Below are positions 32,401 through 35,400 of a stretch of DNA of 64,000 nt, piece after piece; position 1 is the first letter of the stretch, and each line of letters starts with the position of its first letter. The stretch lies in the NCBI GenBank assembly GCA_964035545.1, contig OZ037765.1:4350698-4414697 (forward strand), given 5' to 3'. The stretch is from Bugula neritina. Lineage: Eukaryota; Animalia; Bryozoa. Both the position numbers and the translations under genes were made by a program. The notes below the pieces were generated by a model. That model saw nothing but the letters and a program-made list of their open reading frames with translations, made no database searches and was not told the DNA's origin.

Positions 32401-35400
32401 ATTCCACACTAATATAATAGTTTCATAATACATATACTGTAAATTATATAGCTTTATAGTCTATACTGTATTCTATACTCTAATCTATAGTGTATACTCT
32501 ATACTGTATTCTATACCTCTATAGTCTATACTGTATTTCACAAAAGCAGGACATGTTATGGTAACTTTAAAAATAAGAGTTGAGTTGGTAGTAAATTATT
32601 GGATGTCCTTTGCAGACAACTGACGACCTGACGAATGTAGATAAGAAGAGGAAGGAAGAATTCAAGCACTATGAAATGAACAAGGAACACGAGTACAGAG
32701 AAAAACTCAAACATGCCAACGCAGAAGAAGCTGAGAGGTTGAAGAAGGAGCATGAGGAGAACTTAAAGAAGCACAAGGAGCACCCTAAAGTCAACCACCC
32801 AGTATGTAGACTATGCTTTTGCTCGCTGCTGGCTGCCTTAAGGTGAAGCATAAAATATGTTTCTGCTTGAGAGCAGGCGACAGCAAATAGTTTCTGTTAT
32901 AATTCATCCTTTTTAGTTATAAACTTTTAATACCTTATTATTTCGTTAGCTGTAGCATATGTTCCTAACTTTCAATGTCTTGTGTTTTGTGGTTATCAAT
33001 GTCTTAGATATGTACTGCTGAGTGCATTATATAGTAGCGTATTTTCTTCCTTAATATCTCCAACTGCATATTTGTCTCCTTTCTACTACTATTACTACTG
33101 CTGCTGCTACTACTACTACTACTATTACTACTGCTGCTGCTACTACTACTACTACTATTACTACTGCTGCTACTACTACTACTACTACTACTACTACTAC
33201 TACTACTACTACTACTACTACTACTACTACTACTACTACTACTACTACTACTACTACTACTACTACTACTACTACTACTACTACTACTACTACCACCACC
33301 ACCACCACCACCACCACCACCACCACCACCACCACCACCACCACCACCACCACCACCACCACCACCACCACCACCACCACCACCACCACCACCACCACCA
33401 CCACCACCACCACCACCACCACCACCACCACCACCACTACCACTACTACTACTACTGCTAGTACTACTACTACCACCACCACCACCATTACCTTCTCCAA
33501 GACCATCTCCACCACATCTATCTATCTACTCTCACAGCTCTCCTTCACAGCTATCTGTCTCTACATCTCTCATCATCACTGTTAGCATCATAGCGATGTG
33601 ACTTCTCTCCGCTGCTAACTCATGTATTGTAAGGCCTGCATCTCCTGGCATGTAGAGTTGTGCTCTCCCGACAGGGTAATGCTAACCAACTCAAAGAAGT
33701 TTGGGAAGAAGAAGATCATTTAGATCCCGAAGAGTTTGACCCCAAAGTGTTCTTTGGCTTACATGGTGAGAAACTCAGGCTCTGCACTAGTTACTGATTC
33801 CACCGACACTCTCGTTGTCTGTCTGTCCGTCCACTTTATTGTTCGATTAACCTTTCAATAGCTTGTCTCCGCTATGCCATACTTGAATTAACTGTCAGCT
33901 TGTTGTAAACAAATTATAAATGTCAGGTAAAGAAATTTAGGTCATTCAGCATTGGAAGTTCAAGGCTCTGCAGTTGTTAGTTGTGGGTGAGCCCTTCTAG
34001 TATAGTGTGTGTTCTAACTTTATGGCGAAATGGAGAAGATTCACTGCTTTCCATATAATAAGTTGGTTAACTTTTTAGGCTGCACTGCTTGCCATTGGTG
34101 AAGGTTAGCATGGATGAATACGAAGCTTTTATCTACTTACAAGTTACTAACAGCATTTACCTCACACCTGCCTTGAACGAAAGTCTTATAACAACATTAC
34201 AGTCTTGGCAGTCTTCTCTTTTCATCAACCTACTTTCTTGCTGGCCCCTTGACAACAGGACTAGTGATTTGTTTCCATATCATCATTGTCTAGTATTCGC
34301 TGCCACATGAAATGCCAGTCTTAACTTTCACCCTCCACCCTTCTTTTCACCCTCCACCCTTCTTTTCACCCTTGAACACCTGTTATCTAGTTTAAACCCC
34401 ACTTCTTTTTTCATTGTCACCAAATCATAACATTTCTGCTGCTGTTTGTCTAAGCCTGTAGAAGTTGTAGCATCCTGTCGCCTTACTGCTGTAGTGCCAA
34501 CTCATACTAAGGTTAGACTGTGCTCTCAAAAACTGTCTTGTCCCCTTAGGGTAATAAAGAGCAATTAGAGGAAGTTTGGGAGGAAGAAGACAAGATGAAT
34601 GCTGATAGTTTTGATCCTAAGGCTTTCTTCATGCTTCATGGTATGTGTAGACAGTGAAGTGAGACTGAGGCTTTTGTAGGTTGCTTCTGCATGCTCACAT
34701 ATTCTCTGCTTTCACAGTTCACCATGCACTAAATACCATACCTAATACAATGATCTGTTACAAATCCTTGTTTCTCTTTATTTCACTGTTTCACCTTAAG
34801 GAATTTTAAGTATAGCAAAATTGTAATTCTCTTGAGAACTCTGTTCTCTCTTTTGTTACATCTCAGTGGTTTGATTGCCCATCTGTTACATCATTTTATA
34901 ATCCCTGATTAAAATTATGCTCTTTCCCCCTCTAACTTTAAATATATTTTACCATGTTCATGTATTAAAAATATGCTTTATGGTACAGGGTTACTCTTGC
35001 TTAATTTCTATATATACTAATCTTGGTGGAGGGTTGAATACTGTTATACCTGTATGCTGATTATTTGAGCGTTCTTTGCTAATCAAATTCTGAAATGGTG
35101 TTTTTATTGTTACGTTGCGTATAAAATTGCTGTATATGATGCTATTTTATCAAGTAGCCCAAAATCTATAACAATTTTGGGATAAATGTAATTATAGACT
35201 AGTCTCTCAATGCATTATAGTAATTTAATATTCAATTTAAATGTCAAACATTGAATGGTTTTCCAGGATAGTTTGATATATTATATAGTTGGCCATTATA
35301 TAGCTAGTTATTATATATAGTTGGTTATATAGCTGTTTTCTCGCCCTTACAGATATTGATGGAGACGGTTATCTCAATACCCCGGAAATTGAAGCTCTTT

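Follow-up and report, generated by a model that had tools for sequence, protein, structure and literature searches.

Two copies of exon 6 in a Bugula nucleobindin gene

The 64,000-nt stretch of Bugula neritina DNA analysed here (the window; contig OZ037765.1) carries, on its forward strand, a gene in which two neighbouring exons resemble each other. This raises the questions of whether each message takes only one of them, how the choice would be made, and what it would change in the protein. By its sequence the gene encodes a nucleobindin, a calcium-binding protein of the Golgi. Database searches with single exons linked exons 2a and 3 to Pfam NUCB1_N and exon 8 to EF-hand families, and human nucleobindin 1 (PDB 1snl) came up for both exon 8 and exon 6a; a word search with exon 8 returned exon-sized pieces only. 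A natural transcript contig served as the full-length query, and the closest named proteins are those of B. neritina and Watersipora subatra. The protein has a NUCB1-like N-terminal domain followed by two EF-hands with similarity to 1snl, sharing domain order and EF-region fold with the nucleobindin/calnuc family (NUCB1, NUCB2; PDB 1snl; Pfam PF25434). The ends of exon 6 also fall at the Pro and His positions (Pro221 and His252 in human) reported as conserved splice sites in this family (bioRxiv 10.1101/566836).

The two alternative exons are 6a (33675-33765, +; acceptor ...CGACAG, donor GTGAGA) and 6b (34550-34640, +; acceptor ...CCTTAG, donor GTATGT). Both are 91 nt long with phase 0-1, and their coordinates and paralogous peptides are exactly those of the initial annotation. 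They are identical at 58/91 nucleotides and 19/30 amino acids, with 11, 4 and 18 differences at codon positions 1, 2 and 3, and their 60-nt flanks agree at chance level (21/60 and 17/60). Constitutive exon 5 (32616-32801, +) lies upstream and constitutive exon 7 (35353-35411, +) downstream; the introns measure 873 nt (5-6a), 784 nt (6a-6b) and 712 nt (6b-7). Such neighbouring homologues, matched in length and phase and bounded by valid splice sites, are what tandem mutually exclusive exons consist of. In a local frame test, the reading frame stays open to 486 aa with either exon alone. A message with both stops inside 6b, 475 nt upstream of the last junction, and a message with neither stops in exon 8, 284 nt upstream of it, which bears out the earlier claim that including both or neither shifts the frame. 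Both public B. neritina models use 6a only and miss 6b, and one of them reads into the intron after 6a. Long intronic CTA/CCA trinucleotide runs lie at 33080-33490 and 22120-22370.

Either copy is spliced between exons 5 and 7

RNA contigs from four runs, each from a different study, were aligned to 33500-37255 only, avoiding the trinucleotide repeat at ~33080-33490 and leaving the first alternative pair outside. The runs were inferred to be RNA, and their spliced joints then showed them to be so. Each run has one contig that reads 5-6a-7 and another that reads 5-6b-7, and the loose ends of contigs before 33674 and 34549 are exon-5 letters in 4/4 runs, which shows 6a and 6b each joined to exon 5 on one side and to exon 7 on the other. 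Among the joints listed for the assembled contigs of the four runs, which drop rare forms, there is neither a 6a-6b joint nor a 5-7 skip; intron contigs of depth 3 were retained, against exon depths of 89-837. Seven loose-end rows lie outside this listing, and rare messages with both exons or neither may yet occur. Taking contig depth as a rough guide, 6a accounts for 35, 42, 45 and 31% of the depth in the four runs and 6b is the majority form (55-69%). These data uphold the mutually exclusive use proposed in the initial annotation and run against the case in which only one exon is ever spliced. An assembly artefact is ruled out, since the RNA of four studies has both exons spliced, and a second Bugula assembly and Watersipora also carry the two. 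The 6a/6b pair is confirmed as real, expressed and conserved.

The pair predates the split between Bugula and Watersipora

An exon-6 profile search found two copies, in the same order and of the same length, in the second Bugula assembly (the public B. neritina locus) and in the Watersipora subatra gene, where they lie 656 nt apart. The conservation in relatives that the initial annotation had proposed as a check is therefore found. The second assembly diverges from the window by ~3% in exons 6a and 6b and by 8% in introns; the trinucleotide run at 33080-33490 is ~130 nt shorter there. The Watersipora RefSeq nucleobindin-2-like isoforms carry the a-type exon in X1 and the b-type exon in X2/X3, meaning that this type of event is already present in an automatic annotation. 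In a third, bryozoan-like species, a-type and b-type exons occur on otherwise matching transcript contigs; two more metagenome pieces have a-type exons, and a further a-type contig ends before any b copy appears. The search found one copy each in Dimorphilus, Owenia and Lineus (annelids and a nemertean) and in a second nucleobindin gene of Bugula, unlike the bryozoan pair.

That second, divergent gene lies on another contig (C2, ~5.781-5.785 Mb, minus strand) of the same 216-Mb genome; its exon layout is that of the 6a/6b gene, but its exons 2 and 6 are single. The earlier suggestion that Bugula does in one gene what vertebrates do with two paralogues is therefore wrong.

Peptide identity in exon 6 is 22-28/30 between a copies, 22-24/30 between b copies and 19-22/30 between a and b. 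A tree on 30 columns splits a from b at 88/86, inside a bryozoan group at 86/89, with all support values below 95. Between species, both copies are near saturation at synonymous sites (pS 0.76-1.2) and have pN of 0.03-0.16, showing purifying selection on each in the relatives. Three or four lineages share the type residues without change, V25 and G28 marking a copies and E4, A25 and M28 marking b copies. These comparisons indicate that the pair is the product of one duplication, older than the Bugula-Watersipora split. On present sequences it appears limited to bryozoan-type genes, a limit set by three outgroup genes. Gene order was also recorded around the locus: a CHIP-like TPR/U-box gene lies 3' of nucleobindin in both Bugula and Watersipora, and a Ufd2-type U-box gene lies 5' of it in Dimorphilus.

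The swapped segment leads into the first EF-hand

The EF region of the Bugula a-form was modelled with a pLDDT of 94, and its best structural match is PDB 1snl; a single-sequence model was poor and was set aside. On the accepted model, exon 6 covers a pre-EF helix (9-19), a loop, and a helix (29-36) that is the entering helix of EF-hand 1. The calcium-binding loop of EF-hand 1 begins at an Asp whose codon straddles the junction of exon 6 with exon 7, and therefore every calcium ligand is constitutive, supplied by exon 7. The initial annotation had assigned to exon 6 both the entering helix and an acidic stretch. The helix is supported by the model and its match to 1snl; the acidic stretch does not belong there, as the nucleobindin acidic region, according to PMC2132997, sits between the two EF-hands, and here it lies with EF-hand 2 in constitutive exon 8 (35840-36022, +).

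Alpha-actinin offers a likeness, as exons 19a/19b of ACTN1 and ACTN4 (PMC4435478, PMC9741552) likewise form an either-or pair in an EF-hand domain. There, one exon loses calcium ligands, whereas nucleobindin swaps the flanking helices only and keeps its loop constitutive; with the ligands all in exon 7, an actinin-type on/off switch for calcium does not fit. A form with both exons exists in alpha-actinin, but is out of frame in nucleobindin.

In mammalian calnuc, EF-1 has been reported as the single high-affinity calcium site (PMC2133108). The "EF-1 helix" deletion that abolished calcium binding in that study gives no evidence on exon 6, as the printed primers, by our reading, keep the end of the helix (FFILH) and remove the loop. 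On the model, the entering helix holds the fixed differences at positions 28 (G or M) and 25 (V or A), which could alter its packing. The two forms probably differ in helix packing or partner binding, with calcium affinity affected only indirectly, and the calcium tuning by 6a/6b choice put forward in the initial annotation is a plausible conjecture.

A candidate intron helix encloses both exons

The introns were searched for RNA pairings, as the initial annotation had suggested for docking/selector elements. A scan for unbroken helices found a candidate, H1; a looser scan, in which duplexes were slid along every pair of introns and exons, did not rise above shuffles. H1 is predicted to pair 15 bp between 32836-32850 (+; intron 5, +35) and 34787-34801 (+; intron after 6b, +147), enclosing 6a and 6b, and has a probability of 0.58 in the global fold. 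The second Bugula assembly keeps it, with two A-to-G changes that turn pairs into G-U. In Watersipora these two introns are also predicted to form a helix of 15 bp, whose arm sequence is unrelated to that of Bugula. The helix ranks 1/66 among intron pairs in the Bugula gene and 1/55 in Watersipora, where Bugula is the discovery case, Watersipora is a replicate worth ~1 in 55, and the test windows were chosen after seeing Bugula. Its energy is -22.3 kcal/mol in Bugula and -18.4 in Watersipora versus -7.7 in the single-exon paralogue, and 0/400 real-intron controls reach it in either species.

Two weaker candidates were also found. H3 (32867-32883, +) could pair with 34475-34483 and 34521-34529 before 6b or with 33628-33674 before 6a, and H2 (34330-34358, +), present as two tandem copies, could pair with 35025-35034, which would loop out 6b. 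Both have near-zero probability in the global fold. H1 is kept by position only, whereas H3 shares an 8-bp core with Watersipora; wobble changes are seen, and no true compensatory change. A 15-nt exact match between Bugula and Watersipora at 33975-33989 (6/2000 shuffles) was rejected, being absent in the second assembly and differently positioned, as was a second arm pair near 34697-34711, which does not hold in that assembly.

Helices of this candidate kind, formed over a long range by introns around an exon cluster, are known from human ATE1 exons 7a/7b (PMC7797038) and in the srp and Dscam models (PMC6071210, PMC4691838). Those pairings are conserved in sequence and were proven by compensatory mutation, whereas H1 is predicted and its sequence has fully turned over; unlike in those systems, the best nucleobindin helix encloses both exons. 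In ATE1, competing pairings give exclusivity and a separate long-range helix sets the ratio (PMC7797038). By analogy, H1 may set the 6a/6b ratio as the ATE1 helix does, which is a lead and not a proof.

How one of two exons is chosen

The explanation that we favour, with good confidence, is an ancient tandem duplication followed by one-of-two splicing that is biased by intron pairing and backed by decay. Of the two nucleobindin genes, one would have undergone the duplication in a common ancestor of at least Bugula and Watersipora. In each mRNA, exon 5 is spliced to one of the two copies and this copy to exon 7, as the RNA contigs show. Purifying selection maintains both 6a and 6b, whose type-specific residues are fixed, and the resulting proteins, on the model, differ in the pre-EF helix, the next loop and the EF-1 entering helix around an unchanged calcium loop. 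The one-of-two output would most likely come from splice choice biased by RNA pairing of the introns round the cluster. Nonsense-mediated decay would clear the frame-shifted both and neither messages, in which the early stops lie. A helix enclosing both exons would not by itself force a one-of-two choice, and the competing helices H2 and H3 are weak.

Exclusivity could also come from decay alone, with the exons spliced independently, the both and neither messages destroyed and the helices due to chance. This is possible, if rather unlikely. Both wrong forms have stops far upstream of the last junction, no convincing alignment was found between the Bugula and Watersipora introns, and the general duplex scan stays at shuffle level, all of which suits this account. 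However, it leaves to coincidence that one and the same pair of introns comes top in both species, with arms unrelated in sequence, at a level that none of the real-intron controls reaches, and near-equal use of 6a and 6b would squander many transcripts.

Classical docking/selector or bidirectional pairing of the Dscam, srp or ATE1 type, in which H3 would loop out 6a, H2 would loop out 6b and H1 would set the ratio, is an equally tentative alternative. The 8-bp core that pairs proximal intron 5 with the region before 6b is common to Watersipora (0.2-1.4% of real-intron controls), H3 in Bugula pairs about equally before 6a (-23.4) and 6b (-24.3), and the Watersipora H1 5' arm has a second partner inside the 6a-6b intron. 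Yet H2 falls short of significance, since 8% of real-intron controls reach it, and one pair of H3 is lost in the second Bugula assembly. Their near-zero probability in the global fold and the lack of any true compensatory change also speak against this reading.

That the two exons are functionally redundant, or that one is a decaying copy, is improbable. The calcium ligands are unchanged, and most sites that differ between 6a and 6b vary among single-exon nucleobindins too, as redundancy would allow. Nevertheless, both copies are expressed at 31-69%, and their type-specific residues have stayed fixed while synonymous sites saturated. In the 63 sequences from outside the bryozoans, T predominates at position 25 and K or N at position 28, where G and M are both rare.

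Steric exclusion by a distal branch point near the 6a donor, for which the initial annotation had pointed to a pyrimidine tract at ~34320-34420, or U2/U12 incompatibility is barely credible: branch-like TACTGAT and TACTAAC lie at +29 and +382 of the 6a-6b intron, but they have no Watersipora counterpart, this intron is 784 nt long (656 in Watersipora) with ~40 AG dinucleotides, steric exclusion needs a long AG-free zone and the one before 6b is just 35 nt (25 nt in Watersipora), and all donors are U2-type (GTATGT, GTGAGA, GTATGT).

Other alternative segments of the gene

The first alternative pair consists of exons 2a (29762-29884, +) and 2b (29924-30040, +), separated by a 39-nt intron; public models merge the two (B. 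neritina NUCB2, Watersipora X1). The Lineus longissimus nucleobindin locus (3323-7640) has up to five tandem exon-2-like segments, of which RefSeq isoforms use at least two, and the Dimorphilus locus (2451-2824) has two, merged in the gene model. The exon-2 pair therefore either far predates the exon-6 pair or had several origins.

The gene also has an in-frame cassette exon of 33 nt (31236-31268, +), the counterpart of which Watersipora isoform X3 lacks. A frame-shifting micro-exon of 16 nt (36442-36457, +), also present in the second Bugula assembly, was included in 2/4 RNA runs and skipped in 2/4. Its inclusion switches to a short C-terminal tail and ends the protein at 378 aa versus 486, without the repeat tail rich in Pro and Gln; with its stop 43 nt ahead of the last junction, this form may escape decay. 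In the last exon (37250-37465), a 36-nt coding repeat with much Gln, Pro and His occurs ~6 times. The two pairs give four forms, and with the cassette and the micro-exon the ceiling is 16, where the initial annotation had counted eight with the micro-exon. In the third bryozoan-like species, 3/4 combinations of the pairs are present among assembled contigs (2a-6b, 2a-6a and 2b-6b). This hints at no strict coupling between 2a/2b and 6a/6b, such contigs being assembler paths and not molecules.

Significance for nucleobindin and for either-or splicing

The 6a/6b pair adds a member to an established class, that of mutually exclusive exons duplicated in tandem (tandem exon substitution events; PMC9741552). 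Like the events described there, it comprises adjacent homologues of equal length and phase, used one per mRNA, old and conserved; the nucleobindin gene has two such clusters. The main text of PMC9741552 gave 0 hits for NUCB, and no description of either-or exons in nucleobindin was found in the literature searched, which most subscription papers lay beyond. As the class of event is ordinary, the surprise is modest.

The finding corrects the public Bugula models, from which the more abundant exon, 6b, is absent. It also supplies two naturally occurring variants of a region of nucleobindin that has received little study, the helices that precede its main calcium loop, and a comparison of the two proteins could show whether calcium binding is tuned by these helices while the ligands stay the same. 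For splicing, the locus is a small lophotrochozoan system in which control of either-or choice by RNA structure can be tested, a subject studied mainly in insects and vertebrates so far. A bolder reading, which we consider unlikely, is that a long-range helix around both exons, kept in position while its sequence turned over fully between bryozoan families, controls the choice, that the choice is cell-type-specific and linked to the exon-2 pair and the tail-switching micro-exon, and that one gene would thereby yield nucleobindin forms that differ in calcium response or partners.
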